From Oikopleura dioica (taxonomy: Eukaryota > Animalia > Chordata): a stretch of 57,156 nucleotides of DNA. Location: NCBI GenBank assembly GCA_907165135.1, contig CAJRAX010000011.1:1-57156 (forward strand), given 5' to 3'. The notes below the pieces were generated by a model that did no database searches, was not told the DNA's origin, and saw only the letters and a list, made by a program, of their open reading frames with translations. How positions within the stretch are numbered: the stretch's first letter is position 1; every line of letters begins with the position of its first letter. The position numbers were made by a program, and so were the translations under genes. Positions 246 through 57,156 of this stretch are shown in pieces.

Positions 246-251
246 TTGCCC

Positions 252-28321: not shown

Positions 28322-28495
28322 TTAGTCAGGATCTAAATTAAAATATCATTAATGGAAAGCCGCGTAGCGGCTTTTTAAAAAAACAAAGCCGCAAAAAAGA
28401 ATTAAAATATCAACAGAAAGGGTCATTTGAAGCGGCTTCGTTTCCAAAAAAGCCGCTACGAGGCTTTTCATTAATGATTTTTGAGATCGCCGACT
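28322..28495. mobile_element. MITE family A-related foldback
   Basis: aaaatatcattaatggaaagccgcgtagcggctttt is inverted at aaaagccgctacgaggcttttcattaatgattttt. Confidence 0.65.
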
Positions 28496-29188: not shown

Positions 29189-31155
<1,967 letters not shown>

Positions 31156-31815
31156 AAATTCAAAAGCCAACTCACGCACAAGTTTCTTCTCCTCACCTTA
31201 TACAGTATTCTACTTATTCATCACAGTATTTCAAAAAGAACCAACAACGATGATAATGAACATTCACTTTCCTCACTCTTTCCGAGCTTCCACTGCTACC
31301 CCCTTAAGAAAACTCTATTCAAAAGTGATTCTAGTCCAGAATAAAACCCAAAAATTCTTATCTTATTATCAAAATTGAGCTCTTGACCTGTATTTTCCAA
31401 AAAATCATGAACAAATGAACCTACCCTTAAAATTCTTAATTTCTCAACATGTTCTATTATTTCCAAATCGATAAAATCGTATCTGTACATTTTGGCTCCT
31501 CAAATTTAAAATTTTTGCGTCTTGAAATTACATTCCTGAAAAACTCTACTTACTTTTGCCTTAAAAAACGCGTTCAAAAAAAAGAAGAATAAACATGAAA
31601 ATATGAAAAATTCAAATTGAAATAAACCAAAATGCTAAAATGAAAGAAACACGCTCAAAAAGGGACCTCGTCTCTTTTTCAGTAAATTTTGAAAAATATA
31701 CCTTTATCATTTATTTTTTCGGAACTACAGAATTTGAAATAAAGTGAGAAAATTGCACCATGCAGGATTTTTTTACAGAAAAAGAAGAAAAAGGAACATT
31801 TAGGAAAAAAAGGAA

Positions 31816-32969: not shown

Positions 32970-33193
32970 TCTTTAAGTTAATGGTCAAACAAAAATACCG
33001 ATTTTCCGATTAAACTAGGGAGGCACTAATAAGATTTTGTTTTCAAGAATTGAATTTTGAAGATGCGCGAGAAAAAATGAAGAATCTGAAGATATTCTTT
33101 TCAGGAATGAGTACTTTGAGTTGAAAAAGAAGAGAAAGAGAGGAGCAGATTTACAAAAATAGACAGGCAGGGAGTTATAATTAAGATTCAAAG

Positions 33194-35152
33194 TCACAAA
33201 ATCATCATTTGTCCATGAAGTTTCTTCTGAGCTGCATCAACGATCGCGAACGCTGCTGAGAGGAGAGTTTTCGGGACGCTTTTTCCAGCGTTGATGACTT
33301 GAAAAGAAGGTAAGCAGTGCGCTAGAAATGATGATGGAATGGTTACCTCTTCGGTTGAAGATTCCTCGTAAAAAGAGATGGCTCGTTTCGGCAAGAGACT
33401 TTCGCTTTCGGTTTCAATCGAAGTCGGAAGCTCTGAAGTGAAGAGATAATGATTTTGCTGCGGAAGATAAAGAATTACCTGTCATGGCAGTACAGTCAAG
33501 CCCTTGCTCATCTGTTCCAATTATAGTATTTCTTCCATAGATTACTGCGCTATTTGAACTTGGATTGTCAGAGATGCTCTTTTCCGACGTTGCGTTCTAC
33601 AAAATATTTTCATTTTCCGGCAGAAATGAGCCATTCCTACCGTTAGATTCATCCTCGATCTTCGCAACGGCTTGGCAGGAGGCGTCGGACTCGTCGCGGA
33701 AGAAGTAGGGCCAGAAGAAAGCGTGTTTGAGGCGTTGGAATTGATCGTCTTTAGCGGCGTCTTTTTGACAGGGCTGACGCCGTTTGTCAAGTTGTCGGAA
33801 GAGACGAACAGTCGCGAAGCTCGCAGAGAACGGGCTCGATCAAGCGAGTGCGTATTCGACCGCTAAGGAGAGGTAGATGAGGGAGATAAGGGAGGTCTAC
33901 CTTGAGCTTGCCGACTTGGTCGATGAGTTCTGCCTGCGTTCGCTGGAATTTTCGGCCCTTGATTGTATTTCGCGTCGTTTCAACGCGGAAAAAGTGATGA
34001 TGGTCGATTCCAATCAGCCAGATTCGCTTCGCCACTCCTTAGATTGGCCATTTACGACGCGTCTTTATGGAAGAACAAACCTGTGGATGGGCAAATAAAG
34101 CCGATTTTCGTCTCCAAGTTGTTCACTATTCCAGCTCGTACTTTGACATAGAAGATATCTCGCTTGTAGCTGAGCTCGATTATCGTTGGCCAGGCGAATC
34201 TGTTCAACAAGATCGCTAGAAATCAGATGGAAACGGTGGAGAAGGGGTTACTCTTACTGTTTTGCATGATGTAAATTCCGCCAAAATGGCAGGCCAGGAC
34301 AAGATCCGTATTTTCCGCGTCCCGGACGTGAAATTGATGAAGCCTAAAAACGGTCAATTTCGCCAGCGAAATCAAAGAACTACCCATAAAGCGGTAATTT
34401 CGAAGCAGTTTCCAAATACTTCAGCTCCGCTTTTGAAGTCTTTAATCCATTGTGAGCCACGTGAAGGTCGGATATTCGTTGCATTAAGTTTTCGGAAACG
34501 TTTGGAGCGAGTTTGAGCGAGACGAGGGCGTTGTGATCTTTTTGAGTGTACTGAACAGGAGCATCGCCTAGTTCAGCTTGAGCTGCTAGCGAACCTTTTT
34601 CAGGGCTTCATCAGTGTTTGAATCTATCTTCGATCCTTTTTACTTGATTCTAGTGCTCTTGTCTCACTTCTTCAATGAGAGCTGAATCAAGGAAGATACG
34701 ACATTTCTAGCTTATTTAATCGTTATGTTTTATTCTGTAAAGCCCTTTCCTAGCAATGCATGCGTAACAAATGAAGCGAGAAGTCGTCCCTTTGCAATAT
34801 CGTCCCTCAGTTGGCGATACATGTACAATCTGGTGATTTCCTCGACCAAATAGGCCGGATCTGGCGGGTAGAGCTTCACGCAAAACTTCACCAGCCACGG
34901 CTCTTTTAGCTGCCTTCTTATTTCTTTATCCAGCCTTCAAAAACATCTCCAATCTCTTCAAAACAAAGAAGAATACCTGATCCACTTTCTTTGGTCGTTT
35001 TTCAGGGAAATATACAAGCCAAAGTATTCTTTCTCGCGAATGTCCAGTGAGTCGCACATCAAATCGAACAGCTTTTGCCCTGTCGCCTTCTTTTCGACCT
35101 CGAGGATCTTCGACTCTGCGCCAAAGACCTCGACTTGGATCTCTTTCTTCAT
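33194..35152 (-). CDS. FERM-domain (band 4.1-like) protein
   Basis: [90 protein letters not shown]. Confidence 0.9.
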
Positions 35153-35391
35153 ATTTTCGAATTTGATTCTAGCGCCGTGTACGATTTCCAACTGATCATC
35201 TGAAGGGAGGAAAGAGTTAGGGGCTTTCAAGTTTCAACTTGGTCAGTGACTTTTGGGCAGAAATTTTAACTAAAAGGGGAAAATAGGAAGTTTTTCGTTC
35301 GGAACAATTTTAGCAGAACTGGCATTTTAGACAGCTTTTGTCTAAGCAAAGATATTTCAGATAAAAGGGGGCAGAAAAGGAGTAAAAATAA

Positions 35392-37537
35392 TTAGTCTTC
35401 GATCATATCGTCAATCCAACCCCAGGCGATGATTGAAATGCGCCCTTCGTCTTTGAAATTGTTCGGGTGGACTGCCGGGATTCCGTGGCGCCATTCGACA
35501 TTCACTTCTTTGCCGAAGGTGTAGATGGTGCCGTTGTACTGGGGCACGGAGATCGTCGTTTTTGTCTTTTCAACTGTTCCATGAAGGAAGAGAACTAGGA
35601 GTACCTATCAATGGAAAAGCCGAGCTAGACTTGGAAGCCTGTGTAAAAAAACTGACAGGGTTTAAAAATCTCAGATGAAAAGCCACGTAGCAGCTTTTTC
35701 AACAAATTCTGAACATTTCAGACCCTGACTTAGGGCATGACTCAGGTTTTTTCACAGGTTTCCAAGCCTCTTCTTTCTCTCTCTTTCTCAAAATCTGAGG
35801 AACAGTTCCTTGGCGTGTTCAAAGGCAGCTTCGCGCTCCATGCCGAAGCTGACTGCAATGGTGAGGTTCTGCGTCTTCGCCTTGTCCGCCTGAATAATAG
35901 AAAAGGATAATAAAGCTTTGATAAATAGCGAGTGAAGGATGAAACCGCTTTAAGAAAGGTCAATCCGCCTCTTCCCCTTTTTAATTAAAATTACCTTTAC
36001 AGCAGCTGCATCGTGGTGAAACGGTTTCCACTCGCTCGAATTTCTGTACCAGTTGAAGCGCGTCGCTTTCACGTCCATTTTGAAGTACTCTGTCATTTTC
36101 TTCACAACTTTGAGGAAGGTGGGACACCTCTTCTTCCAATTTCCTTGTTTATCATCGGCGATCAAGTGGGAGTCGTTGTGCCATTTAACAAGTAGTTTAT
36201 CTAAAACGAATTATGAGAGATTTTGTCTTTTCGTAATTTCAACAAAAATGACCTTGTTTCGATGGTGAGTTAAATTTTTACCTTGATCGATGCCGGAGTT
36301 TTGAATCTCATCAAGTAGACTATTGTAAATGGACATGTCGTTTTCATCCCCGAATAGGCCATTTACAACGACGACATCCCTAATCTCAATTTTAATTAAA
36401 AGTCTCTATTATTGTCCCAGAAATATTGCTCGAGAAAGAGAAGGACGAAATAATCGATCGATTTCTCTGTTGAATAATTCTAGTAGCGCTCTTTTCTCCC
36501 TACCTATGGTTGTAAGGGCGTTTGTAGGAAGTCCAGTGAACAGGAGCAGGGACCAATCGGAGATCTGGCGGCTTGTAGCTTGGCTTGAAGTCGACTGTAT
36601 TTCGCCCCTTGACCATTTTGACGCTTTTGTTCTGTTTCGTCTTGTTTTCGTAGTTTTGGCTATTTTCGCCGTTGTAGGAGTGATCGTGGTCGCCGTTCTG
36701 GATTCGATTCTTCCAATTTTCATTTCGAGGATTTCGATGTTGACGATTTTGGTCTTGATCTTCGTGGCTCTGGCGAATGTGGTTGTTTTGCAGACGACCT
36801 CGTTGACCGCGATTTCCGCTACGACCTCTGAAATAAGAAATGATTAAGATATCTCTAGAATTATTCTGAGAACTGAAAGGCCGCTTGCCGCTTCTTGAAA
36901 AAGACCGAAAAGCCGCGCTCTAAAGCGGACTGGGCTCGGCAACCTGAGTAGAAAACCTGAGTCAGGGTTCTAAAAGAATAAAATGAAAAGCCGCTTCGCC
37001 AAAATAATCAACTCAATGAATTTTTTAACTAGCGAAGCCGCTTCGCGGCTTTGTTTTTAAAAAAGCCGCTTCGCGCCTTTTCATTTTACTCTTTATGAAC
37101 CCTGACTCAGGTTTTCTAATTAGGTTGCCGAGCCCAAAAAGCGGATTTGAATTGATTCGCATCGCAGCTTCGTTTTTAACGCGGCTTTTCATGAAAAACA
37201 ATATTTTACTTACCTGTTTGAATTCTTGAACTGATGCCTGTACTTTTCATAATCGTCGTTGTGATTCTGGTCCTTGGCAGATCCGGAATCTCCAGAATGA
37301 TGAAGCCGAACTTCTCGATCGTGATCGTGCTGGTAACTCTTTGGCTCCTGATGTTCTTCTTTTCGCGGTTTTGCCACGGAGAACTTTGAGAATTGCTCCG
37401 CCAGGTTGTCCAGGTCATTTGACTTTTCACGGCTCTGGAATAAAGAAGGTTAATAATTTCGAATAATCAATTTGAATTAAAAATAGAAATCTTACATTTT
37501 GCGGCCCTTTCGCCCGGTAAAATCGATCTTCTGACAT
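35392..37537 (-). CDS. AlkB-like 2OG-Fe(II) oxygenase with Arg/Asn/Gln/His-rich N-terminus
   Basis: RFNWY, PFHHDAAA (HxD), IAVSFGMEREAAF, EWRHGI (distal His), GRISIIAWG (2OG-binding Arg), across about 7 exons. Confidence 0.8.
35628..35768. mobile_element. MITE family A inside a GA-AG intron
   Basis: cttggaagcctgtgtaaaaaa / ttttttcacaggtttccaag inverted ends, with gaccctgact..gactcagg core. Confidence 0.65.
36930..37137. mobile_element. MITE family A, best-preserved copy with 8-bp TSD
   Basis: About 40-bp TIR ctgggctcggcaacctgagtagaaaacctgagtcagggttc / gaaccctgactcaggttttctaattaggttgccgagcccaa. AAAGCGGA is duplicated at 36922-36929 and 37138-37145. Confidence 0.85.
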
Positions 37538-38569
37538 TGTCTGATTCTTCTCTCTCTCTCTTTTCTCCTCTCGAAATTCTCGATCGATAAAATACAATTC
37601 GTAATTCGCGAAATTGGCAGCTGCGTCTCGGAAAAATTTTTTCGCGCGCGATTTCGCCCGACTGGATTCTCAACTGACGCGCCTCGGCCAATTAGATTCG
37701 CGCGTTCGTGGAAAGTCAAATTCTCAATTAGGAGTTACAAATTTCGATTCTAGAGCCTAGTATCTGAATTCAACCCACAGTTTAGTAAAGAATTTAAAAG
37801 GATTTATCCCTGAAATAAAGATTGAAAAGATTTGAAAAAAACATCGAATTTTTCTATTGATTCCCGATTTTTCTCCTCATTTTCGCGTGGATCTGAAGTT
37901 TGTACATTTCACAGCTGGTAGTGAAGCTGCTTGGTAGAAACTACACTTTAGAGATTTTTCCATCGGAGCCCTGAAGAATTACAAAAAATCACTTTCAGTT
38001 CGCAAACCGCTATTTCTTTGAACTCGCTCTTGATTTGCTCCTCTAGTTCGTTCGACTGCTTCTTGTCGTCTTTTCCCCGAATAAGTCTTGCAACAGTTCT
38101 GAACTCCTTCCAGTCCTCATCGACGCCGTCATCCAAATCGTGCAATTTATATATTATTTGACGTAAAAACTGATCAACGAAAGGAATAAAGCAGTTTTTT
38201 CCTGACAGGTCTTTTTGACTTCTTCCGAGGCCTCGCTGTGAAAGAACATCAGCTACTGGAACTCTTTAATGTTGATAGTACTGTCCTTATTTATGGTAAG
38301 AAATACGCGTTCGCCTAATCTTAAACAAAAAAGTTCAGTCGGAAACGCTGTGTGCCATTAAAATTAAGATTAAAGATTGAAATGTGACTGAGCTTATCAA
38401 CGAAGAAAATGGTTTCGTAGGAATATTTGTCGACCACAAAAGGAGAGTAAATGCACTAAGCAGCCACAAAAGACCTACCGGTCAAGCTATTTCTATTTAT
38501 GGAAAAGGGGTGTTTTCTTGTTGATTTTCACTTTCCATGAACTTTGGATCGTTTCATTTCCACAACAAG

Positions 38570-39162
38570 CAACAACATTATGAGCTCCTCTCTTCAGCCA
38601 TCGTCTACACCTTTATGGGCAGATCGAAAGATCTCGCCGTGGGTCCAAGAAACGTGGATTCCGATGGCTGCCGTCACGTAACAATCCTTCCCTTGAGACT
38701 TCGAAAACGGCGCTTTTCAGATCTGAATCGGACCCGAGATTGGCGAACTTGCTCTGTTTCTGCTCCGGAGCGATCATTCTTCTTCTCGGAATTTTCGATC
38801 TGGGCGCTGTCGTCAACTACATTTCAAATCCTGTTCTCGTTGGTTTTATTTCAGGAACGCGTTTTCATGAATAAGTTTCAAAAAAAGTCTTCCTTGATTT
38901 CTTCGCCAGATTTTGTGAAAGCGTGATTTCCAGCTGCATCGATCATCATCCCCTTTTCTCTTCTCGAGCGAGTGTCTGGTCTCTCTGGCCTTCCTGGACC
39001 TTTTACCAGAAAATGGTCATGCGCATTGGAGAGTCGAAATACTACGACGCGGTTATTGGACTGAGCACGCTCGCTACTCTCCTCGCCTTGAAAAATCTTC
39101 GAATTCACTTTGAAGACCCAAAAGAGGGCGACTCCGCGGTTGTGAAGTTTGGGCTTACTTGA
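38570..39162 (+). pseudogene. SLC26/SulP anion transporter fragment (SLC26A11-like), truncated and frameshifted
   Basis: VYTFMGRSKDLAVGP, LCFCSGAIILLLGIFDLGAVVNYISNPVLVGFISG and RIGESKYYDAVIGL occur in shifting frames. No C-terminal half or STAS domain is seen. Confidence 0.65.
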
Positions 39163-39960
39163 TTTCTTGCGGCGAAGAGTCCAATCCGTCTCTTCGATCA
39201 TGTTATTCACCGCATAGAGGCAGCGGATTGAATCTCTTTTCTTCCTTATTTTTCCTCGAGAAGCCGTTCAGTCCATTCCAGCGTCATTTCCGATCTCTGG
39301 AGCAGCTCTTGGCCGAGGTTTTGTTCGCTCAAGCTGACGACCACTTTCATCAAGCTCGCGCCTTCCGTCCGCGATTTCGAGCTAAAGACGACTTGAATTT
39401 CGGAGCTTTGAAATGGACTTACCAGCTGTTCTTCAATCCGAGCGCGTAAGAGGAATTCCTCAAGACACGAGATGATTTCCTGGAATATCTCGGCAATCAA
39501 AACTTGTTCCAACAAATTGAAGAGTCCGTTCAAAGATGATTTTTTCACGACGTCGTCGTAACAGTCCAAAGTCGATGACGCTGCCAAGTCGCAGAATTTC
39601 AGCTCCTCGTCGACGCTTTTTGTTGAATTGCTTATGGCGGAATCAAAGCTATCTTCGTCGTAGAAGTCTTGATAAATGATCATCTGGGACGACTTCAGTG
39701 TCGATTTCGCTCGTTGGATAAGATCTGGTGGCGCTTGCTCTCCGGATCGTATTTTCTTCACGACAGAATTTGAACTCTCTCTTCTGGTTCGGCTCCGTCT
39801 TTTCCAGCGTGTCTAGGAGTTCTGAATATTCGTTGTAGAAGAAAATTCGAGCCCTTAACTTACCTTTGCTCATTTTCTTTCTCAGTTCCTTGTCCCTTTT
39901 TTCTTTGATGCTCATCAAAGAAGAGCTTGGCGACGAGAACAGCGACTCCAATCGTGGCAT
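39159..39960 (-). CDS. Unknown protein, possibly disrupted
   Basis: Overlapping coding-like ORFs 39246-39761 and 39649-39960, no recognisable motif. Confidence 0.35.
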
Positions 39961-41738
39961 GAGAGAAGAAGACAGTGATGACTTTGCGGATTGAGGGCAT
40001 TTTGCACTGATACAGCTAACCGTTAAAAACGCTTGGGAATAAGGACTTGTTTGCTTGAAGCCCGGTACCTATTCTGCCAAATCTGGGAAACTGATAAATC
40101 AAAACTGCAGTTCGAAAGACGGGTTCGACAAAAGAATAAAGTTTGTTTTGTATTCAAATAAACATGCGTCTTTCACCTCATTTACAACTGCTCTTGACTA
40201 ATTTTTTACCTCGAAAAAACAGGAGTTTTCTTCTTTGATTTCAAGATTTGCTTTTGTAAAATGAAAAAAAGTATATTTTCAAAATAACAGCTTGAAGAGA
40301 ATGTCAGACGATCATTTGAGTACTTCTTCGTCCACGTGAGGAGAATTTGAATACTCAAAAATCACATCGACTAAACATTTTCAAAGTCATCGATTTGGTC
40401 TTCAACTAACGGAATTCTTGGCTTTTCAATTGAAAATCAGTCCCGCTGAGCATTTTGTTAATCACAATCAAGCATCTCATCTCATCAGAGAAAGAGCTCG
40501 AGGACGCGAGGATTCTGAAGCGGTAGCAAGAGCAGGCACTAGAGCCTTCGACCTCGCCTACATCATCATTCGCTTCTACGAGAAAGTCAACAAGGATATT
40601 TACGAGGACTTCTTGAATTTAAGCGAACTTGCAAGGTCTTAAATTCCTCCTAGAGCTGGAGCGTCTGACATGATATGATCTTTTCATGAAGCAATCCGTG
40701 TTCTACCGCTCAATCGGCGTCGACGAGGACTTCTGCAACTTCATGTTCAACTTAATGCGAGAAAAGCTGAACGAATACGCGAATGGGAAATCTAGCTGCC
40801 CTTGGACCGGCCGAAACAGCGAGTTTCCGAACAGCAAGCCGCAAGCATAACGACTCGTTATTAACGAGAATTCAATTCCTTTATTTGCAGAAAGATGAAT
40901 TTAGTCTAAGATTTGAAAACTTCGTTTATTAGTTATTAAGAAGCAGGAGAGAACTCTTTGAATATTTCTTTCAGAACTGCTATCGCTGAACTTTAAATAG
41001 ACGCTCTATTATAGACTCCACTATTTGAGTTCGCAAAATTGAAATTTGAAACTGTAATTTTACAAGAAAAATTGCGAACTGGCCTTGTGCTTCCGGCGAG
41101 GCAAATTTCCGCTGACTCTTCCAGATCTTGAATGCCTCCTTCAAATCCGGATCGTCACTTTCCGCGAAATCTTGTTCCTCCATTTGATCGTACTTTTCGC
41201 TAGCTTTGTCGAGCCCAAGCAGGAAGGACTCAAATTTGTGAAGTTTCTCCGCTCATCGCCTTTGAAACTCTTTCGCAATTTTCGCAATTTTCGCTTCTTG
41301 ATTTTTGACTGTACCTATAAGAGGTTCTTTTGGATCGGCAAATTCCCCGCCATCGTCAAGTAGCCAAGCAATTGTGGACATGTTGTGCTCGGCTTTAAAG
41401 CCATATCTTGCATAGAGATTGATTATTTTCTTCAGAACATGGCCTCTCTTTTGTTGGTTACAGGCTAGAAAGGATAAAAAATTATAACCAAATAGGGAAA
41501 AACGAAAATCGTACCTAAATGAAGAGAACTGTGCTTTCCTTTTGCTTTGAAAGGCTTCTCTAGCATTTCTTGGTCATCTTTATATCGTTTAAAAGTTATC
41601 TTTGAACTTGAAAACGGTTTTCTTCCGATGACAGCAAGGTCGAGAATGCTCATATTGAATTCGAGCTCATCCGAAGCCGAGCCGCAAGGAAGCTGGTGAA
41701 AACGTGCGCTGAAGTCACGCTGGAAATTATTAAAAGGA

Positions 41739-43075
41739 TTAAATTCTTTTACCTTGCGCGGTTCTCGTCTCGACCATGCTACGAGTCATCGAGCGCTCAT
41801 TCTGCAACTCCGTGAACGCCTTGACTGCTTTTTCCGTCACCGATCGAAGTCGTTTTCGGGGTGGCGGGCAGCTTCGTTCGCAAAGGCCATTTACTTCCAA
41901 CTTTTCTTCCCAGTATTTTCGCTGCTCCTCTAACTGAACGCTGTAGACTCTACAGTGTAGAGTTTCAATCACTCGGTTTGAATCTTTGCTTCCAAATCTT
42001 TCGAATTGTCCTTCGTCCCTACGATTTTCTCGGAGCTTTCGTTCGTAACCAGTCGATGGACGAAATAATCTCGAGCGTAGTCCCAAACTCGATTGTCGAA
42101 GATGTGTCCTAGAAATGCTCCTGAGCGTGCTCTTGTGTGCATCTCCCGCAGCTAATGTTTCCGCAAACGAGGCCTTATCCATAGATTTTCTTTTGAATTG
42201 CAAGAAAGACGTGCATACCCTTAGCTTTCCTGACTCGACGGAGTTTGCGTATATCGACAAACTGGGCAAGTGGAGTCTTCCTATTTTCAAACATTGAGAG
42301 TGGAAGGAATGATTGCAAAGAACGGTTGAAACGGACTTCACCGACTCGTCCATTCGCTCCAAACAAATCGTACAAGCAGGCAGCTCGGTGAGATTCGGTA
42401 ATGGCCAGCCTGCGCTTTCTCCAGCGTGAAGCAGTTCCACTTTTCCCACATACGTGATTTACGAAAACCTTTATAACTTTTTATGTGACGGCTTTTCTTT
42501 ACCTTGGCAAGTTTCTTCTAAGAGCGAGTTGAATTTCTGCCCAGTAATTGAGTGATAAAAAGTATCGGCACTTTGTTACTCGTCGAATTTTAAGAGAACC
42601 ATGTACTGATTCAGAGACTGGTCGCGCACGATCTTGATGTGTTCTATTTTCTTGTCGTAATTTCCGAGTGAACGGAGCAGATCCTGCGTGTCTAGATCCA
42701 CTGGAACATGTAGGAGCAGGAGCATGTCGCTAGGCCTTCCTCCGTGATGTTGAAGCCGTAGTTTGTCTTGTACAAGTGAATCAGCCCTTGAACTGATTTA
42801 AAAAGGAACTTGGGTTGGGAAAAGTTACCTTGGACAGATTCTATCGCAGCAAGACCGGACATGAACGGTTTTCGGTCGATGAGTTCGTTAGTCACTTTTT
42901 GCGATAGGTTCTGAGAGGGAAAAGATGTTGAAGATGAATTGCTTGAGTTTGAGTTACCTTGAGAGCGTCGGCGAAGGTAGATTCTACCTGAAAATCGACG
43001 GATTCGATTGAGTACTCGACGAATTGCCGAGATCAACGCATTTCTTGGGATTTTTCTCTGTCATTCGAGGACATG
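41739..43075 (-). pseudogene. BRAP: BRCA1-associated protein (BRAP2 domain, RING-H2, ZnF-UBP), disrupted
   Basis: IKIVRDQSLNQYMVLLKFDE*QSADTFY (in-frame TAA at 42576-42578), ELPACTICLERMDES..LCNHSFHSQCL, STCPVCRY, ENLWI..LVCGNISCGR and RVWDYARDYFVHRLV, with frameshifts and a missing segment. Confidence 0.8.
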
Positions 43076-43309
43076 ATATTGACTGCTGATTCTTTTCTAC
43101 CTCGGCGGGCTTTCATAGGACTAGAAAGAAGCAAATGAAATGTGTGATGTGATAGAAACTTAAGTTGTTAGTTTCAAATCAGAAAATAAGAAAATGCATC
43201 TTCAAAACTTAACGGAAACTTACTTATCAGAGCATTCTCGGAGACTAAATAATTATGAAACTGATAATTATCTAATAACCTGGAAGATAAATACTTTTTC
43301 TAAATAAAT

Positions 43310-44050
43310 TTACCTCAAATCAAAAGCGTCGTGCTGAAAACTCTCAAAAATAACGGCTCTTTCGATATTCTGCGCATTTTTGATTCCATGAAGAGGGTCG
43401 CATTTCACATCGTCCTCCACTTCTCCCTCCAAGTCTTCCAGATCTCCACGTCCGCCAAGCAACTCGCTCAACAAAATCGCCGTCTGGCCGTTTGTCCCAA
43501 AATAAATCGTGTCAGATTCAACTTCGCCGGAGGAGTCTTCTTCGAAATCATCTTCGCCGTCATCCAAAATTTCTAATTCTCATGGCAAGGTTGGCCTTTC
43601 TCTTTCGATGATTCCTTCCACAAAGCCGACGGAAAGCTCTCTTCTACCATCCTCAAGTTGATCGGCCAAAGGAGGACGCATCCAGTTGATTTCCTTCGAA
43701 TGGCCGGCGCAGACGAGCGGGAGGATCCAGTACTCGATCGAGGTTATTTCTATCAACCTTTCTGAGTTTGAAAGGTGCTCCATTGTGAAGTCGATCGGCG
43801 CGCTTTTCGATAGTTGTTTCAGCTTCAGAAGGAGCTCATAGAGTAGCGTAAACCACGTTCCAGAGATCAGGATGCGAGTCTAAGTGGATCATTTGAAGCC
43901 TCTTTGCCCCCAATTGACATCGACGGCGACATCCGCCGAAAGGGCCGAAACCGGCGCGAACTTCTCAACAAGAAGTGAATCCCAGCCAAGAACCTCTCCA
44001 TTTCCTCCGCTTAAAATATCTGGCAGACCAGGAAACCAATTGGTGCATTT
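43310..44050 (-). pseudogene. Unidentified coding-like fragment with in-frame stops
   Basis: Collinear short ORFs 43889-44116, 43580-43783 and 43310-43567 are separated by single stop codons. Confidence 0.3.
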
Positions 44051-44436
44051 GCAATTCTGAAATTCGTACAAACAGCATGCAGCTTTTTCTGTACTGGCAA
44101 AGTTTTTACTTTTCAAAGAAATTTCGGAAAAGCCGCTTTGCGGCTTCTTTTTGACTAAGGGGTAGTTCAGCTATAAATTTCAACTGTTTCAGAACCTGAC
44201 TCAGGAATTCTTGTTTTTTTCGGAAAGGCGAGAGTTTGGAAAAAAAAATATACTTTTACGCCTTGTCCTTTTTCAAGTCTTCAATTTTCTCCTTTTTACG
44301 AAAAAAGACTGAGGAGCATTTTAGTCGGAGCGAAAGAAAAAGCCGCAAAAATAGCCCACAGCTTCAAATAAAACATTTTATCTCGAAATAAAAAGCCAAT
44401 TCTAGCAGCTGAACATCCCCCTTTTTCTCCGGAAAG

Positions 44437-44503
44437 TGACAGGAGTGGGATTCGAACCCACGTCCCGGAAAAATCCGCGCTCTGGCCGCTGAGCTACCCT
44501 GTT
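44437..44503 (-). tRNA. tRNA-like gene lacking a complete anticodon loop (pseudo-tRNA or SINE-like head)
   Basis: AACAGGG TA GCTC AGCGGCCA GAGC G CGGA TTTT TCCG GGAC GTGGG TTCGAAT CCCAC TCCTGTC A. D and T arms and A/B boxes are intact. The anticodon arm is 12 nt instead of 17. Confidence 0.75.
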
Positions 44504-45639
44504 TTATCACTTCCGGTGACAAAAGGGACTCTCTGCCGCTTGAATTCGGCTTTCTATTTTAGAATAACTGAGTCAGGGTCATTCAAAAGCTTTTAAAGCT
44601 TTTTTCCGAATGATTCCCCCATTTTTTAAAAGAGCTCGTTCCAAGGATCAGGAATCGTAGTGGATCATTTTTGGATGAAGAAGAAACATTCCGAGTGCAC
44701 TTCAACGACTCTCAATTCCATCTTTGGCATTCTAAAAACAATATTTTCAAAAACTTTCTCGAAAGTTCATTCTTCGTTCATTTCCGCTTCTTCTTCAGAA
44801 CCGTCAGAAATCTCGATAAGGGAGTCTTCGTCCGAGTCTTGCTCCGACTCCGAGTCTGAGTTTGGAATGATCGCCCGCGAAGAAGACTCTTTTTCGAGGA
44901 AGGGCGGCGGACTGTGATTATTTTGGAATCGGCCTCGCTTTTCGAGCTCTTCTGAAAACTATTTCATAAAAATTTCATAGCAGAATTCGAACCTGTTTCG
45001 TGGAAGGAGTCGCGTCTCTTGATCAAATTAACTTCCTTCATCAGCATTTTTCTTTCTGTTTTCCGATTTCGTGGCCGACCATGCTCTGCGCCTTGCTGTT
45101 GCCGTCGAAAAGATCGTCGTCCCGAGCGTTCTTTCGTAGTTTCCTTTGCAAAAATTATGTTGACTTGCTTTTCTCTGCTTCCTAAAGCTAAAATGTTTCG
45201 CTCCGCGCGCGGACCAATCAGCGCGCGCGGAGATTCCAAAAGCGAGAAAAAGAGAAAAGCCGAAAAATGGTGCTAAGGGATGAAAATGAAGAAAACAGTG
45301 AACTAGAGAACAAGAAATAAAAAGAAGGGGTTTTCTTCACTGATTATTTTTGATCTGCACTCGATTGAATGTGAAATTACTGTAGCAAGCTAACTGAAGC
45401 GATCTTTAGAATAAGGCCCAATCGGCCATTTGTCTGATGAGCGGCTGAGATGAGCGTGGCTAATCTCGTGAATGACTTCTTCAGGGCTGAAATGGAGGGG
45501 ATCGCGAGCTAATCGACAACAACGACGAGAAAGGAACTCCAAGGAAAGACTCCTCGAAAAATCTAGCGCAACCGTTTCTTCCCCTCTCGCAAGCCAAGAA
45601 ATACCAACTCGTAAAACAGCTGTTTCAGTCTTCGCAATC

Positions 45640-47280
45640 GTCGTCCGTCAAAAACATTCCGCTGGAGAAACGATTGTTGTAATTGGAGCTGGACCATCAG
45701 GAATTTCTACAGCCAGACAGTTTCATTATTTTGGATTCAATGTGAAGATTCTAGAGGCGAGGAAGAGGATAGGAGGACGAGTTCATGTTTGGGCACCTTA
45801 GGTTCGTTTGAGTGAAAAAGCTCACTTATCGTCCATTTTAAGGTAGCTGTAGGAGCAATGGTCATCAACGGCCGCCAAAACAACCCTATCATCACCATGA
45901 GTCGTCAAATCTACCACGATGTCCACATCCTCGGAAGCCAATGCGGCCTTTTGTCAAATCCGAATCGATGGCTCGTGGACCAGACTTGAGAATGGAGCAT
46001 CATTTCAACACGATTTTGGACATTTTATCCGACTGGAGATTAGACAAGAAAAAGGACATTCCACTCATCGTCGCTCACAAAGAATGCGTCAGCCAAAGCG
46101 CGGAAAGATACTCAAAAACAGAAATGAAACTGCTCGACCTCCACATCAACAACTTGGAATACGCCTGTGGAGCGAGCCTTTCTAGCGTTTCAGCGCTCAA
46201 TTGGGACCAGAACGAGCGTTTTCCGCAATTTGGCAGGGATCATGCGATCGTGACATACGGATTTTCTGATGTTTTGGAAGAATTGTCGAAACCGCTGAAT
46301 ACAGAGTTTGAAATTTTTCGGTTTACCGGTGGCGAGCATTGATCATTCTGGGGAAAAGGTGGTCGTCGAAACGACTCATCGGGAGAAAATTGAGGCGGAT
46401 AGGATCGGATACAGAATACAATTTTCTAAAAAAGGTTGAAATAAGACTTTTGTATCCATTTCAAAAGTTCTTCGTGTCAATCCCACTCATGCTCGCTCTC
46501 ATGAAAAAGAAAATCATCAAATTCACCCCCGACTTATCTCCGCGAAAATGGCGCGCTGTAGAAAACATCGGCGCCGGCCTGATAGAATAATGCCTCCTCC
46601 GCTTCGATTCAAAATGGTGGAGTTACATGATCGGTGGCGCTGATTTCTTTGGCTCCATCAGGCGTCGACGCTGATGATGAACACGATACGTCGGGGATTT
46701 TTAATGTGTTCTACGATATTCCATCGGCTGAGAGTGATCATTTTACGCTCATGTCGATCGCAGCTGGAGCTTCGCTTGATATTTATCATTCGATGAGTGA
46801 TAAACAGCTCGTTTCCAGTGCGATGGCGACGCTTCAAGGCAAGAGTCAATTAACAAGCTCCTTTTTACTTGAATTGTCGCCATTTTGTGACTCTTAAAAG
46901 AAATCTTCAAAGAAAACACGAGCCCAGAGCCCCTGAGCTTCCACATTACACGCTGAGGAAAAGAAGAATACTCCCATATGAGTTATTCTTTTATCAAACT
47001 CGGTTCAACCGGAAAAGACTACGACAAAATGGCGGAACCAGCTTCCGATCGATTATTTTTCGATGGAGAAGCCACCAATCGGTACGTTTAAGCGCATCCC
47101 TCTATAAAAAATGTTTGATAGGTATTTCCCACATACAGTGACAGGAGTGACAGTCCCTACTTGTCCGGAGTTCGCGAAGCAGCGAGAATTTTCAAGCTAG
47201 AACACAAGAAACTCAACCCTGATTCGAAATTCTACGGCGACTCGATTTTCGAACAAACTTCTCTTCATCCCCAGGTAAAG
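45640..47280 (+). pseudogene. KDM1B: Lysine demethylase LSD2 amine-oxidase domain, disrupted
   Basis: IGAGPSG..LEARKRIGGRV, INGRQNNP, NLEYACGASL..WDQNERFPQFGRDH, GAGLIE*, ITR*GK, GEATNR, SGVREAARI. Stops at 46588 (TAA) and 46954 (TGA). No intact SWIRM or zf-CW region is visible. Confidence 0.8.
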
Positions 47281-49899: not shown

Positions 49900-50345
49900 A
49901 CAAGAAAATGCGATTATTTGGGTATTTCGGCTGTCCTTACTGCGCCAATGTAAGGGCCTATGTTAAATTTCGGGGAATCGATAACAAAGACGTCGAAGTC
50001 AGCATTGGCAAGCCAGAGCTGAAGGGTGTCATTGAAAACTACTTACAAGGTAAATTGCTTGTTCCTTTTGGCAAAGAATAGTCATTTTTAGTGCCCGTCC
50101 TCGCCTTCTACAACAACAGCAGTAGCGAGCCCGACGCAGTAGTGAAGGACTCCGGAGCGATCGTCTCGACTCTGGAGCAAGTGCTCCGATTAGTGGCCGA
50201 GCCGATGAGCGAAATCGCCAAATAATACTTCGACGAAAAGGGTAAATTCATCAAGAGCAAGGTGCCGATCCTGACGAAAGATGGACAGATCCAGACAGTA
50301 AATTCGTTCAAGACGGAATTCTATATATCGAAGCTTTTGCAGTAA
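49900..50345 (+). pseudogene. PTGES2: Prostaglandin E synthase 2-like glutaredoxin/GST N-domain, truncated
   Basis: LFGYFGCPYCANVRAY..VEV, VPVL..KDSGAIVSTL, with in-frame TAA at 50223-50225. No GST C-terminal domain before RSU1. Confidence 0.6.
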
Positions 50346-50590
50346 TCAACTTGACTGAAGGGACGAGCGCTTGGGAGCAGTACGAACAGAGTCCCGAGCT
50401 GATGCAGTGGTACTACTCAGTCCAGCACGCGCTCGACACTCATCAGGGCATGCTCTAAGCACTGGCCCCACTGAATCACTTTTAGACTTGAAAAACCGTC
50501 CAAACTTCATTCTTCAAAAGATAACTAACCAAGGAATCAAGGCCCAAGCTTGTGAAATTACTAGATGTTTTCATTCGTCTTCATTTTAGA

Positions 50591-51440
50591 ATGTCAAGCA
50601 ATGTCACAAAAATCGTTGAAGAAAACAAGAAAAGCAGACACTACAGTCTTTCTCTCAGCGACAAGAGCATCACCCAACTGACGCAGATTTCTTCCGACTT
50701 CAGCCAACTGCAGCACCTCTCCGAGCTCATTCTCGCGCACAACGGCCTCAAACAGCTCGCTGCTTCGATCACAAACTTAAAGAATCTCAAACTGCTCAAC
50801 TGCTTCAACAATGAGCTCGTCGAGCTTCCCGGAAACTTGTCGGAGGTGAATTCAAGAGCGCGATTCTTTTCTAGAAGCCCTTGTTTTAGCTGCAAGAGCT
50901 GAGTAATCTCAATTTGGGAATGAACAAGCTTCAGCGCCTGCCGAACAGCTTCCACAAACTCGCCAAGCTCGAAATACTCGACTTGACGTAAAACAACTTC
51001 AACGAAACAGTTTGCGAGCTCCTTTCTAAGGTAACTCTCAGTCAGTCGCGTTTTTCCTATTTTTGTAGTCGCTGCGCGCGTTGTACGTTTCCGACAACGA
51101 CTTCCACAATCTTCCTTCAAAAGTGGCCCAATTTAAGAGACTTCAAATTCTTTGCGCAAGAGATAACGAGATAACGCTCATTCCGCCGGAAATCGCACTA
51201 ATGGACAATTTGACAGAGCTTCATTTACAGGTACTTGATAACTTCGTTTAGAATCGTATTTCATTTGGATCTTGCAGGGCAATTTGCTGAGTCTACTTCC
51301 GCCGCAGCTTCCAGTGCTCGTCGGGAAGAAGCTCAAAATTCTGAGAGTGGAGAGGAACTAGTTCGTCCGACCGATCGAAGAAAACAGGAAAAAGGCCAAC
51401 AAGCGCTGTAGATTATCTCCGCTCCGACCGTAAGACAGCT
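50591..51440 (+). pseudogene. RSU1: Ras suppressor protein 1 (LRR), disrupted
   Basis: LNCFNNELVELP, LNLGMNKL, LEILDLT*NNFNE, LRALYVSDNDF, LHLQGN, ERN*FVRPI, DYLRS. Three intact introns, stops at 50989 and 51359, and frameshifts near 51410. Confidence 0.85.
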
Positions 51441-51743
51441 CTTCTTGATAGGCTTCCTTTGAGGCTCAAAGTTTGAGCGCAATTCAGAGTACTGCATCTT
51501 CTACAACCGCGAAGGAGGCGACCAGAACGCGAAGCCCTCTGCCGAGCGGCGCAAAGAGCGGGAGAAGAAGCGGCAAGTCACCCGCCCAGTCCAGGCTTGA
51601 TCTGATTCTGTACCTTTTTTGCATGTTCTGTCTGGCAGCACTTCCAATATCCACCAGCGCTACTTTCATCGTCATCAAAAACTCCCTTCAGTGCACTGAC
51701 CTCTCTCTCTTCTACGCTTGATCATTCTAACTGGCCAATTTAA

Positions 51744-52417
51744 GGGGTAGTCCTCGCTTTTGAAAAAATCGGAATTTTCAAATTTTCTTTGCAAATTCTG
51801 AAAACTCGTTAGAAGAGCTAAAAACTTTGTGTTGATCATTTTTTCAAAATATAAGAGGAAAAAACCCAAAATCGCACTTGAAAAATGAGATTTTGATGTA
51901 AAATTTCAAAAACTCGAAATTTTTGCCAATTTTATCCATAGATATAGCTTTATTTCGATTTTAAATTACCTCTAGATAATAAAGATAATAAATAAAATGT
52001 CTATTATTATGCTAATTTAGTATAAATCATCCTTAAAAACTTATTTTTCAAGATTTTGAGACCCAACCTTTGATTGATGGCATTACATTATGACTTTTCG
52101 GAATTTTTAATTTCCCTGAATTCAAACCTAGACGAAGGTATGAACTTTCAAAAAAATTAATAAGTTTAAATTTTTGAAACATCCTCTTGATTTTAGGCGC
52201 GTTTAGAAAAAGGCCAAAATGGCGATTTTGCCCGGGCTAGGTTCTATTATCGCCCTCTAACTCCTTAAGCGGGCGAATAAAATTTTTTCCGTGAATTCAA
52301 ACTTTCATCAGGGTTCGACCTTTCTACTCATATAGTTTTTATCCCTTAACCCCACCGCAAATTTGTGGGAGCGCTGTTCAAAAAGAGCCGAGATCGCAAA
52401 AAGCAGGGACTACCTCC
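51744..52417. mobile_element. 674-bp non-autonomous element with TTAA TSD and GG..CC ends (Kolobok-like)
   Basis: TTAA at 51740-51743 and 52418-52421. TIR GGGGTAGTCCTCGCTTTT / AAAAAGCAGGGACTACCTCC. Confidence 0.75.
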
Positions 52418-52421
52418 TTAA

Positions 52422-52471
52422 GGAACTCCCGTTGAAACTGGTCCACTTTTGAAAGGTTGCTGGGAAGTTCC
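52422..52471. mobile_element. 50-bp TTAA-flanked mini element sharing a TTAA with the preceding one
   Basis: TTAA GGAACTCCC ... GGGAAGTTCC TTAA (52472-52475). Confidence 0.55.
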
Positions 52472-52599
52472 TTAATTGGCAAATGGTTCCTTTTCTTCTA
52501 ATAAATTCGGTTTCTTCAAAATATTTTTTATTCGTATTTTCAGAATTGGCGATTGAAATAAGCCATCCCTTTTGTTTTTACGAATATTGAGAATGATTA

Positions 52600-53301
52600 C
52601 TAAAGGAGGAATCAAACGAGGAATTTACGGGTGTATGGCGCCCAGGTTATGCGGCCGTCCTTGAGTTCCTGAAAGACATGGCCAGCGCGAAGGAAGACAA
52701 AGACTCGGCCTTCCGGTCGGTAATGTCGATGGACAAGTCAGCGTTTAGCCGAAACGATCGGAACTATGAGAACCTCTCGCAAAACAGTGTAACAGTTACT
52801 TCTATCTCGTCGAGTAGATCGCGGCCGATCGACGCCGAGAGAATTAACGCAGGCTTCGTTGTCAACTTCAAAAGAAATACTCTATCTAGGTCACTATTTT
52901 CTGCACAAAGAATTATCCAAACTTGTTTTCAGTACAACTGCGAAAGCAACGGGCTCTGGCGGCTACTTGAACGTCTCTCAAGCGGGTCTCATTCGAGAAA
53001 CTCTTTTCGCTATGGAAAACATCCCCGGCCTCTTCATTTGCTACGACGACAACGTCAATTCACTTTACAGATACCGACTCAAGGAGAAATGACAGAGTAG
53101 ACAGTCGCGATCGATCAGATGTGGAGTCGCTGGGCGCGTTGGGCTTTCACGTTCGCGAAATCAGCGCCTTTATCGCGCAGCACGAGAAGCAGGAAGGATG
53201 ATTGGAAGCGCTGGTCAGCAGAATTCGAGCTGGGACTTTTCCAAGTTTATGCGGCGGAGTATGATGGCAAAAAGACCAAAAAAGAGGACTTGCGAAATTG
53301 A
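52600..53301 (+). pseudogene. Unidentified coding-like fragment with frame changes
   Basis: Overlapping ORFs 52678-53100, 52859-53092 and 53119-53301. Confidence 0.3.
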
Positions 53302-53515
53302 TGCTTCCGAAGCACGAGAATAGACAACTTTAACCGCTGCTGTTTAAGATTTCCAGTATGACTAAATTATAAACACCATAACAGTGTTTTCGGCTTGGTC
53401 TACGGGAGTTTTTCTGAAAACGGGTGTGGGTGGGGATGGGGACAGGCAAAGTCCTCATGTCTTATTATTTGGCGGGAGACTCTGTCTGTCTGCGATCAGG
53501 CAGGCTCCCTTTAAT

Positions 53516-55878
53516 GTTATGCTTGTAGAGGGCTCAAGTTAGTCTTAGAGCGTGGGCGCGACTAGGGTTATGCTTGTAGAGGGCTCAAGTTAGTCTTAGA
53601 GCGTGGGCGCGACTAGGGTTATGCTTGTAGAGGGCTCAAGTTAGTCTTAGAGCGTGGGCGCGACTAGGGTTATGCTTGTAGAGGGCTCAAGTTAGTCTTA
53701 GAGCGTGGGCGCGACTAGGGTTATGCTTGTAGAGGGCTCAAGTTAGTCTTAGAGCGTGGGCGCGACTAGGGTTATGCTTGTAGAGGGCTCAAGTTAGTCT
53801 TAGAGCGTGGGCGCGACTAGGGTTATGCTTGTAGAGGGCTCAAGTTAGTCTTAGAGCGTGGGCGCGACTAGGGTTATGCTTGTAGAGGGCTCAAGTTAGT
53901 CTTAGAGCGTGGGCGCGACTAGGGTTATGCTTGTAGAGGGCTCAAGTTAGTCTTAGAGCGTGGGCGCGACTAGGGTTATGCTTGTAGAGGGCTCAAGTTA
54001 GTCTTAGAGCGTGGGCGCGACTAGGGTTATGCTTGTAGAGGGCTCAAGTTAGTCTTAGAGCGTGGGCGCGACTAGGGTTATGCTTGTAGAGGGCTCAAGT
54101 TAGTCTTAGAGCGTGGGCGCGACTAGGGTTATGCTTGTAGAGGGCTCAAGTTAGTCTTAGAGCGTGGGCGCGACTAGGGTTATGCTTGTAGAGGGCTCAA
54201 GTTAGTCTTAGAGCGTGGGCGCGACTAGGGTTATGCTTGTAGAGGGCTCAAGTTAGTCTTAGAGCGTGGGCGCGACTAGGGTTATGCTTGTAGAGGGCTC
54301 AAGTTAGTCTTAGAGCGTGGGCGCGACTAGGGTTATGCTTGTAGAGGGCTCAAGTTAGTCTTAGAGCGTGGGCGCGACTAGGGTTATGCTTGTAGAGGGC
54401 TCAAGTTAGTCTTAGAGCGTGGGCGCGACTAGGGTTATGCTTGTAGAGGGCTCAAGTTAGTCTTAGAGCGTGGGCGCGACTAGGGTTATGCTTGTAGAGG
54501 GCTCAAGTTAGTCTTAGAGCGTGGGCGCGACTAGGGTTATGCTTGTAGAGGGCTCAAGTTAGTCTTAGAGCGTGGGCGCGACTAGGGTTATGCTTGTAGA
54601 GGGCTCAAGTTAGTCTTAGAGCGTGGGCGCGACTAGGGTTATGCTTGTAGAGGGCTCAAGTTAGTCTTAGAGCGTGGGCGCGACTAGGGTTATGCTTGTA
54701 GAGGGCTCAAGTTAGTCTTAGAGCGTGGGCGCGACTAGGGTTATGCTTGTAGAGGGCTCAAGTTAGTCTTAGAGCGTGGGCGCGACTAGGGTTATGCTTG
54801 TAGAGGGCTCAAGTTAGTCTTAGAGCGTGGGCGCGACTAGGGTTATGCTTGTAGAGGGCTCAAGTTAGTCTTAGAGCGTGGGCGCGACTAGGGTTATGCT
54901 TGTAGAGGGCTCAAGTTAGTCTTAGAGCGTGGGCGCGACTAGGGTTATGCTTGTAGAGGGCTCAAGTTAGTCTTAGAGCGTGGGCGCGACTAGGGTTATG
55001 CTTGTAGAGGGCTCAAGTTAGTCTTAGAGCGTGGGCGCGACTAGGGTTATGCTTGTAGAGGGCTCAAGTTAGTCTTAGAGCGTGGGCGCGACTAGGGTTA
55101 TGCTTGTAGAGGGCTCAAGTTAGTCTTAGAGCGTGGGCGCGACTAGGGTTATGCTTGTAGAGGGCTCAAGTTAGTCTTAGAGCGTGGGCGCGACTAGGGT
55201 TATGCTTGTAGAGGGCTCAAGTTAGTCTTAGAGCGTGGGCGCGACTAGGGTTATGCTTGTAGAGGGCTCAAGTTAGTCTTAGAGCGTGGGCGCGACTAGG
55301 GTTATGCTTGTAGAGGGCTCAAGTTAGTCTTAGAGCGTGGGCGCGACTAGGGTTATGCTTGTAGAGGGCTCAAGTTAGTCTTAGAGCGTGGGCGCGACTA
55401 GGGTTATGCTTGTAGAGGGCTCAAGTTAGTCTTAGAGCGTGGGCGCGACTAGGGTTATGCTTGTAGAGGGCTCAAGTTAGTCTTAGAGCGTGGGCGCGAC
55501 TAGGGTTATGCTTGTAGAGGGCTCAAGTTAGTCTTAGAGCGTGGGCGCGACTAGGGTTATGCTTGTAGAGGGCTCAAGTTAGTCTTAGAGCGTGGGCGCG
55601 ACTAGGGTTATGCTTGTAGAGGGCTCAAGTTAGTCTTAGAGCGTGGGCGCGACTAGGGTTATGCTTGTAGAGGGCTCAAGTTAGTCTTAGAGCGTGGGCG
55701 CGACTAGGGTTATGCTTGTAGAGGGCTCAAGTTAGTCTTAGAGCGTGGGCGCGACTAGGGTTATGCTTGTAGAGGGCTCAAGTTAGTCTTAGAGCGTGGG
55801 CGCGACTAGGGTTATGCTTGTAGAGGGCTCAAGTTAGTCTTAGAGCGTGGGCGCGACTAGGGTTATGCTTGTAGAGGG
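53516..55878 (+). repeat. Telomere-associated 51-bp tandem array, block 1 (46 full units plus 17 bp)
   Basis: Unit GTTATGCTTGTAGAGGGCTCAAGTTAGTCTTAGAGCGTGGGCGCGACTAGG, with no variant copies seen. Confidence 0.98.
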
Positions 55879-56170
55879 TTAGGGTTAGGGTTAGGGTTAG
55901 GTTAGGTTAGGGTTAGGGTTAGGGTTAGGGTTAGGGTTAGGGTTAGGGTTAGGTTAGGGTTAGGGTTAGGGTTAGGGTTAGGGTTAGGGTTAGGTTAGGG
56001 TTAGGGTTAGGGTTAGGGTTAGGGTTAGGGTTAGGGTTAGGGTTAGGGTTAGGGTTAGGGTTAGGGGTTAGGGTTAGGGTTAGGGTTAGGGTTAGGGTTA
56101 GGGTTAGGGTTAGGGTTAGGGTTAGGTTAGGTTAGGGTTAGGGTTAGGGTTAGGGTTAGGGTTAGGGTTA
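55879..56170 (+). repeat. Internal (TTAGGG)n tract, about 290 bp
   Basis: TTAGGG repeats with occasional TTAGG and TTAGGGG. Confidence 0.98.
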
Positions 56171-56875
56171 GTCTTAGAGCGTGGGCGCGACTAGGGTTAT
56201 GCTTGTAGAGGGCCCAAGTTAGTCTTAGAGCGTGGGCGCGACTAGGGTTATGCTTGTAGAGGGCCCAAGTTAGTCTTAGAGCGTGGGCGCGACTAGGGTT
56301 ATGCTTGTAGAGGGCCCAAGTTAGTCTTAGAGCGTGGGCGCGACTAGGGTTATGCTTGTAGAGGGCCCAAGTTAGTCTTAGAGCGTGGGCGCGACTAGGG
56401 TTATGCTTGTAGAGGGCCCAAGTTAGTCTTAGAGCGTGGGCGCGACTAGGGTTATGCTTGTAGAGGGCCCAAGTTAGTCTTAGAGCGTGGGCGCGACTAG
56501 GGTTATGCTTGTAGAGGGCCCAAGTTAGTCTTAGAGCGTGGGCGCGACTAGGGTTATGCTTGTAGAGGGCCCAAGTTAGTCTTAGAGCGTGGGCGCGACT
56601 AGGGTTATGCTTGTAGAGGGCCCAAGTTAGTCTTAGAGCGTGGGCGCGACTAGGGTTATGCTTGTAGAGGGCCCAAGTTAGTCTTAGAGCGTGGGCGCGA
56701 CTAGGGTTATGCTTGTAGAGGGCCCAAGTTAGTCTTAGAGCGTGGGCGCGACTAGGGTTATGCTTGTAGAGGGCCCAAGTTAGTCTTAGAGCGTGGGCGC
56801 GACTAGGGTTATGCTTGTAGAGGGCCCAAGTTAGTCTTAGAGCGTGGGCGCGACTAGGGTTATGCTTGTAGAGGG
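56167..56875 (+). repeat. 51-bp tandem array, block 2 (about 14 units, GGCCCAAG variant)
   Basis: Same unit with T>C (GGCTCAAG to GGCCCAAG) in all 13 copies of that position. Confidence 0.97.
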
Positions 56876-57156
56876 TTAAGTTAGTCTTAGGCGTTAGGTT
56901 AGGTTAGGGTTAGGCTTAGGGTTAGGGTTAGGGTTAGGGTTAGGGACTAGGGTTAGGGGTTAGGGTTAGGTTAGGGTTAGGGTTGAGGTTAGGGTTAGGG
57001 TTAGGGTTAGGGTTAGGGTTAGGGTTAGGGTTAGGGTTAGGGTTAGGGTTAGGGTTAGGGTTAGGTTAGGGTTAGGGTTAGGGTTAGGGTTAAGGTTAGG
57101 GTTAGGGTTAGGGTTAGGGTTAGGTTAGGTTAGGGTTAGGGTTAGAGTTAGGGTTA
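56876..57156 (+). repeat. Terminal telomere (TTAGGG)n with a degenerate proximal part
   Basis: TTAGGG runs to the window end, with a G-rich + strand as expected for a right chromosome end. Confidence 0.97.

Follow-up and report, generated by a model that had tools for sequence, protein, structure and literature searches.

A candidate family of gap-facing arm ends in Oikopleura dioica and a scaffold end at which its 51-bp satellite alternates with TTAGGG

The Y' elements of the yeast Saccharomyces cerevisiae are gene-bearing subtelomeric elements of 5-7 kb, separated by short internal telomere tracts. Another case of non-telomeric DNA at chromosome ends is known from Caenorhabditis elegans, in which TALT, a unique genomic segment, is tandemly amplified on all chromosome ends of telomerase-null survivors; yeast Y' elements are mentioned in the same work (PMC4595603). 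In the OKI2018_I69 assembly of Okinawan Oikopleura dioica, tandem repeats of longer period are present in subtelomeres and telomeric repeats in small scaffolds, and these scaffolds were considered possible heterozygous subtelomeres or pericentromeric interstitial telomeric sequences (PMC8008620). In this study, we analyzed scaffold C16 of this assembly (19 scaffolds, 64,281,565 bases), whose entire 57,156 nucleotides form the window examined here, and in particular its distal end, where a 51-bp satellite alternates with TTAGGG. Our tentative interpretation, held with a little less than even confidence, is that the alternation is a real structure that arose when an end of one type (C-type) was copied once, through microhomology, onto an end of another type (T-type), the exit from satellite to telomere repeat being inherited in the process.

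The repeat layout was established with Tandem Repeats Finder (TRF) and by direct reading, and unit identity was counted unit by unit; positions in the window refer to its forward strand. A subterminal block shared with scaffold C1 (42196-53515) ends ...GGCTCCCTTTAAT, which is the anchor base of the array. From this base, block 1 (53516-55878) runs through 46 units of a T-variant and a 17-base partial unit ending GTAGAGGG; TRF gives 46.3 copies of the 51-mer over the same positions, with 100% matches. It is followed by 289 bp of TTAGGG that are interstitial in the contig (tract 1, 55879-56167; TRF 55875-56171, 96% matches, 3% indels) and by block 2 (56168-56875; TRF 56167-56894, 14.3 copies, 99% matches), which consists of 13 units of a C-variant and a 14th with an altered end (GGGTTAA). 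A noisy TTAGGG tract then continues to the end of the contig (56876-57156; TRF 56872-57156, 88% matches, 5% indels). An initial annotation of this DNA had reported such an order, 51-mer, TTAGGG, 51-mer variant and TTAGGG, and this order is indeed what the contig contains. Its description of the end as a telomere was deduced from the end of the contig, and the telomere is therefore a putative one.

The annotation was likewise correct that the blocks are uniform and one fixed base apart. All 46 units of block 1 are identical, as are all 13 full units of block 2, and the sole difference between the two sets is a T-to-C change (GGGCTCAAG versus GGGCCCAAG). Each block 1 unit contains one telomere-type site, TAGGGTTA, and stop codons are present in all six frames of the 51-mer when read by eye. 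An origin of the 51-mer from TTAGGG was considered, and the alignment score was only about two standard deviations above that of shuffled sequences; we make no claim of such an origin.

The junctions between these segments carry short overlaps. The first, J1 (55867-55888), joins GCTTGTAGAGGG to TTAGGGTTAG with a 4-nt overlap, AGGG, and the exit from block 1 reads ...GCTTGTAGAGGG followed by TTAGGG. Tract 1 is clean: its noise is limited to the length of GG/GGG, and a search in it for fragments of the unit found none. At the second junction, J2 (56160-56181), GGTTAGGGTTAG gives way to TCTTAGAGCG; re-entry into the satellite occurs at 56167/56168, where GGGTTAG is followed by TCTTAGAGCG and the five nucleotides GTTAG belong to both repeats, as the annotation had proposed. 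Over all telomere phases and unit positions, the chance of an overlap of at least 5 nt is 0.016, and J2 occurs once in the genome in a search allowing up to 1 mismatch. This combination argues against a random blunt chimera, and the microhomology fits recombinational copying at a chromosome end. The second exit is less sharp. Block 2 ends ...TTGTAGAGGG / GTAGAGGG and passes to TTAAGTTAGTCTTAGGCGTTAGG, with 13 bases, AAGTTAGTCTTAG, that carry the unit on in register (phase -1). The proposal that both blocks leave the satellite at the same base is therefore borne out by a clean switch in block 1, but in block 2 it meets a blurred consensus.

A genome search located 51-mer units in three scaffolds only, C16, C1 and C4. 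The last 15 kb of C16 correspond to C1:6,015,972-6,029,624 without substitutions. The subterminal block aligns with C1:6,015,972-6,027,294 over 7,292 bases with 0 mismatches and 11 small gaps, a further 3.8 kb of the shared block is at 100% identity, and the twin array (C1:6027305-6029614) has about as many units as block 1 and the same exit. With this substitution-free match and the same array exit, the C16 end therefore duplicates the inner end of the C1 short arm. The subterminal block is also 96-99% identical to blocks beside the C4 gap (left side) and the C1 gap (right side). The arrays at C1-left, C1-right and C4-left all begin at the same base as in C16, after ...CCCTTTAAT, and the flank of this anchor is present in a more diverged form at C5.

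Beyond the anchor, the arrays differ from end to end. The C4-left array (C4:5187582-5191085) has 68 of 68 identical C-variant units, to which the 13 full units of block 2 in C16 are identical in turn. The C1-right array (C1:6030400-6034790, on the other strand) is made of 53-bp units, 83 of 83 identical, with about 86% identity to the 51-mer. At C5-left, one 53-bp unit of the family is contained in a 254-bp higher-order repeat (C5:5705301-5706900) whose copies agree at 99%; immediately ahead of the gap, this repeat gives way to TTAGGG through a TTAGG overlap. At C5-right, a unit of 53 bp, sometimes 52 bp, is present in 289 copies (C5:5708749-5724008), after 1.24 kb of CCCTAA and beside the diverged copy of the flank. 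The similarity of this last unit to the 51-mer is no better than that of shuffled sequence, and we regard it as a separate satellite that occupies the corresponding place.

The exit is shared as well. A 22-mer spanning J1, GCTTGTAGAGGGTTAGGGTTAG, occurs exactly three times in the genome, in C16, at C1:6029603 and at C4:5191087. Since J1 is common to C16, C1-left and C4-left, which also share the anchor, it would seem that flank, array, exit and telomere were duplicated together between ends, each array having apparently been homogenized after that duplication. The fixed proximal anchor at all ends indicates that the array behaves as a chromosomal satellite spreading by duplication. Judged by these sequence comparisons, the C16 end is probably one member of a family of arm ends in Okinawan O. 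dioica, with an apparent common plan of a duplicated subterminal block, a 51-53-bp satellite that starts from a fixed anchor base, and an abrupt, outward G-strand TTAGGG tract. The assembly paper contains no description of the 51-53-bp family, the anchor base, the restriction to gap-facing ends or the alternation of satellite and TTAGGG (PMC8008620), and no other description of the family was found in the literature searched.

Members of the family flank all three 500-N gaps of the assembly, and the position of these gaps depends on how the scaffolds were arranged. The joining of megabase scaffolds into chromosomes relied solely on synteny with the Norwegian physical map, that is, with another lineage, a 500-N gap was inserted as the centromere, and a long telomere, where recognized, was set outward when the arms were oriented; there are few inter-arm Hi-C contacts, and the pairing needs more evidence (PMC8008620). 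Satellite followed by TTAGGG is found on both sides of the C1 gap (6029625-6030124) and the C5 gap (5707009-5707508) and on the left side only of the C4 gap (5191657-5192156), i.e., at five of the six gap-flanking arm ends, in addition to C16. The right side of the C4 gap is the sole arm end that has no such cap, and C16 may belong there. At every satellite/TTAGGG end flanking the three gaps the G-rich strand heads into the gap, and the TTAGGG tracts reach a length of 10 bp to 1.24 kb where the contig breaks off. The switches from satellite to TTAGGG are abrupt and occur at the telomere-like seeds AGGG, TTAG, TT and TTAGG, as would fit de novo telomere addition. Both their orientation and these junctions give the five ends and C16 the look of telomeres.

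The outer telomeres, examined at the scaffold starts of C1, C4, C5 and the small scaffold C13, consist of clean TTAGGG over 2.4 to at least 4 kb. They adjoin ordinary DNA where the junction is visible (C1 and C4), and the 51-mer was not found in the first 4 kb of any of the four starts. The search at other ends that the annotation had recommended thus gave a divided answer, with the unit present at the gap-facing ends of C1 and C4 but at none of the four outer telomeres. At the C1 start, about 400 bp of degenerate repeats lie between the telomere and unique DNA; the C4 start switches abruptly at about 2.37 kb, and the C3 start has only about 100 bp of CCCTAA. The long, pure outer arrays suggest active telomerase. 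No match to the telomerase RNA-binding domain (PF12009) was obtained in six-frame translation, with control genomes equally silent, and the literature searched held nothing relevant on an Oikopleura TERT.

The order of the blocks, the identity of block 2 with the C4 units, the shared exit, the unique re-entry and its microhomology are all observed directly in the assembly. To account for them, we suggest that the TTAGGG 3' end of a T-type end would have annealed at GTTAG inside the C-type array of another end. Synthesis would then have proceeded until the donor end was reached, in the manner of break-induced replication or telomere capture, and could have carried along 14 units, the inherited exit junction of the donor and donor TTAGGG. 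As block 2 is the C4 variant unit for unit, a single copying event would explain both the variant and the shared exit. An exit inherited in this way is no sign of a mechanism that cuts repeatedly at one place.

Several points weigh against this interpretation. Nowhere is a Nanopore assembly less well supported than at its contig ends, and the full alternation is present in one contig only, within its last 1 kb. Contigs from four sequencing runs were compared with positions 56140-56330 of the window; 56140-56181 was skipped as a repeat in this comparison, which left J2 without independent support. The C1 twin ends 10 bases past J1 and neither confirms nor contradicts the structure. Fragments of the unit occur in the terminal tracts of both C16 and C4, and all but one are in register with the array upstream: in C4, TGGGCGCG and GTTAGTCTTAGAG are exactly in register (phases -1 and 0 of 51), and the exception is a second fragment in C16, GACTAGGGTT, which is 9 bases out of register behind noisy TTAGG repeats. 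The in-register fragments indicate that reads continuing the array and reads switching to TTAGGG were piled together. The consensus of the terminal tract accordingly seems to blend unlike reads, and base-level statements about the second exit are weakened to that extent. In addition, the structure could have been changed when HaploMerger2, three rounds of Racon, and Pilon acted on repeats to which reads map in several places.

The run contigs also bear on how uniform the satellite is. The unit has a very high summed depth in contigs of the 2025, 2020 and 2022 runs, a depth figure that is not copy number, and these three independent runs hold 88-597 low-depth contig variants of the unit that differ by one to three bases, each with a depth that is tiny relative to the summed unit depth. 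The invariance noted by the annotation is therefore true of the assembled units, but it is partly a product of polishing. Rare unit variants were likely erased at that step, and the real arrays, although very homogeneous, are probably not literally invariant. At positions corresponding to 56245 and 56315 of the window, contigs of the 2025 run pass from the 51-mer into AGCAATACGTAACTGAACGAAG, which we take to be the reverse complement of a Nanopore adapter; recognized as such, it identifies the 2025 run as Nanopore and shows that its contigs keep adapter remnants. A marine metagenome run shared a 0.48 fraction of words in the index, but none of its contigs matched 56140-56330. Among metagenome contigs, a 33-mer of the unit had no match, and a 17-mer gave 34 single chance matches, none of them in tandem and most of them in soil-type records.

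These observations raise the question of whether the end is in reality a simple array followed by TTAGGG, onto which J2, block 2 and the last TTAGGG (together the distal 1 kb) were joined artificially; a chimeric read, haplotype merging or polishing with multi-mapped reads are the proposed causes. The assembly history offers occasions for such a join, as OKI2018_I69 was built by Canu from Nanopore reads whose median length was 840 bp, polished three times with Racon and then with Pilon using 150-bp Illumina reads, merged across haplotypes with HaploMerger2 and scaffolded with Hi-C (PMC8008620). C16, moreover, is a small, leftover scaffold, and its last 15 kb duplicate C1 free of substitutions in a genome with a heterozygosity of about 3.6% (PMC8008620). 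The C1 twin of block 1 contains a hybrid unit/telomere patch (6028671-6028749) and deleted units, both of which are lacking in the C16 copy; the in-register fragments in the terminal tracts and the exact agreement of block 2 with a variant present at another locus are also as a join would leave them. However, J2 is a clean junction with 5 nt of microhomology, tract 1 is clean, and no adapter sequence was found at J2, though adapter remnants are visible elsewhere in contigs of the Nanopore run. Even a join based on overlaps would require a read in which TTAGGG is followed by the 51-mer, and the hybrid patch in C1 is what misplaced reads of the form units-TTAGGG-units would be expected to leave. 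Canu drops parts of reads that are not supported by overlapping reads, and J2 was thus probably present in more than one read. Overall, we consider an artificial join somewhat unlikely. A further alternative, that satellite and TTAGGG alternate repeatedly across the unassembled gap and that C16 merely extends one period further in, strikes us as slightly less likely still. It agrees with the succession of satellite and TTAGGG into the gap at the five gap-side ends and C16, with gap-side tracts of 10 bp to 1.24 kb versus outer arrays of 2.4 to at least 4 kb, and with the pericentromeric interstitial telomeric sequences proposed for such small scaffolds (PMC8008620). The high summed unit depth in three runs, which is not copy number and cannot be calibrated, would hint at more copies than the approximately 174 assembled. 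Yet the entire assembly contains one re-entry junction, and that these ends face a centromere is partly a matter of construction, the long telomere having been set outward.

The annotation itself had favored a standing system of mixed maintenance: telomerase would add repeats in alternation with the amplification of a single 51-bp monomer, the latter by rolling circle or from an alternative RNA template, and breaks would fall at a fixed base. Every block is uniform within itself, and the abrupt switches in all family members, at the four seeds named above, are such as de novo addition leaves. Nevertheless, we regard such a system as very improbable. The exit is also present at two other scaffold ends, so that it is inherited and not recurrent; block 2 is an array existing elsewhere, the C4 variant, and not the fresh amplification of a mutated monomer; there is a single re-entry junction; all ends have the fixed proximal anchor; and the unit is absent from the four outer telomeres. 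As for a rolling circle or an alternative RNA template, an Rfam scan of 50000-57156 gave no family match and a sequence-index search found no RNA run that carries the unit. We know of no precedent for a 51-nt telomerase template. What does survive of the annotation is part of its idea that non-telomeric sequence was copied into the end, in that the repeat lies distal to TTAGGG in the right orientation and joins it through microhomology, but neither tandem amplification nor spread is seen.

The proximal part of C16 is of a different character. Its first 42 kb have no colinear partner elsewhere in the assembly. Positions 1-20000 and 26001-46000 form a patchwork of repeats common, at 70-98% identity, to the near-gap regions of C1, C4 and C5, and these repeats also match the first 18 kb of C2 within the same range. 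Two short arrays of 21-bp units, at 29942-30001 and 30134-30192, lie about 130 bp apart and are near reverse complements of each other (GCAGAACGGCGTTCTGCAAAT and TGCAGAACGCCGTTCTGCATT).

Taken by itself, the C16 mosaic would be an ordinary recombination product of related ends, or perhaps a join made in assembly. More important is its context, namely that an anchored satellite family marks gap-facing arm ends, each capped by TTAGGG running into the gap, and this wider arm-end pattern is the portion of the finding that deserves follow-up. A broad generalization, that every megabase arm is capped by outward TTAGGG at both ends, with a conserved block and an arm-specific 51-53-bp satellite at the inner one, is conceivable but appears doubtful to us. 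The arms may be separate telocentric chromosomes, of which the satellite-bearing ends are the centromeric ends. Alternatively, the three centromeres may lie on head-to-head telomere arrays flanked by satellites, and if this were true, C16 would be the first place where the sequence of an Oikopleura centromere comes into view. A karyotype study of O. dioica, which describes the centromere sequence as unknown, found about six signals in metaphase and oocytes, with about 12 in other nuclei left unexplained (PMC7941098). Extreme genome scrambling has been reported for O. dioica (PMC11067885), on which both the location of centromeres and the physical joining of arms bear.

We finally compare the C16 end with the systems that resemble it most. 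Pericentromeric interstitial telomeric sequences and fusion sites, reviewed in PMC6410037 and described in the Indian muntjac (PMC2760882), are similar in that TTAGGG adjoins satellite at sites mapped to the region of a centromere. In C16, non-telomeric DNA continues past tract 1, as it does at an interstitial site, and family members adjoin all three gaps, whose placement came from synteny with the long telomere outward. The two arms of C1, and likewise those of C5, lie head to head, as after a telomere-telomere fusion. Unlike at established fusion sites, no read or contig spans a gap, and the tracts could equally be true ends. TALT1 and TALT2 of C. elegans (PMC4595603) and mTALT of the mouse (PMC7889907) share with C16 a "reservoir" anatomy, a non-telomeric block between telomere repeats of the same orientation near an end; in C16, tract 1, block 2 and the terminal TTAGGG are on one strand. 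In contrast to TALT in survivors, C16 comes from a wild-type animal and has one block, and the outer telomeres checked show no spread. With a single re-entry junction and unit matches at C16, C1 and C4 only, neither tandem amplification nor a spread to other telomeres is seen, and hence the features that define TALT-based maintenance are absent.

The likeness to the yeast Y' elements is of another kind. Both have, beyond an internal telomere tract and in matching orientation, a non-telomeric element that occurs on a subset of ends and spreads by recombination between ends. Here the element beyond tract 1 is block 2, which is identical in its units to the C4 array. The element in C16 is a block of 51-bp satellite, however, and not a gene-bearing element of 5-7 kb, one internal tract is seen, and ends of the C16 type face presumed centromere gaps. 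Telomere-associated satellites, too, are end-specific, locally homogenized tandem repeats between unique DNA and TTAGGG, and the present arrays share this arrangement, being placed between chromosome-specific DNA and the terminal repeat, uniform within each array and diverged between arrays. By analogy, the C16 end may be likened to a yeast Y' end or a TALT reservoir.

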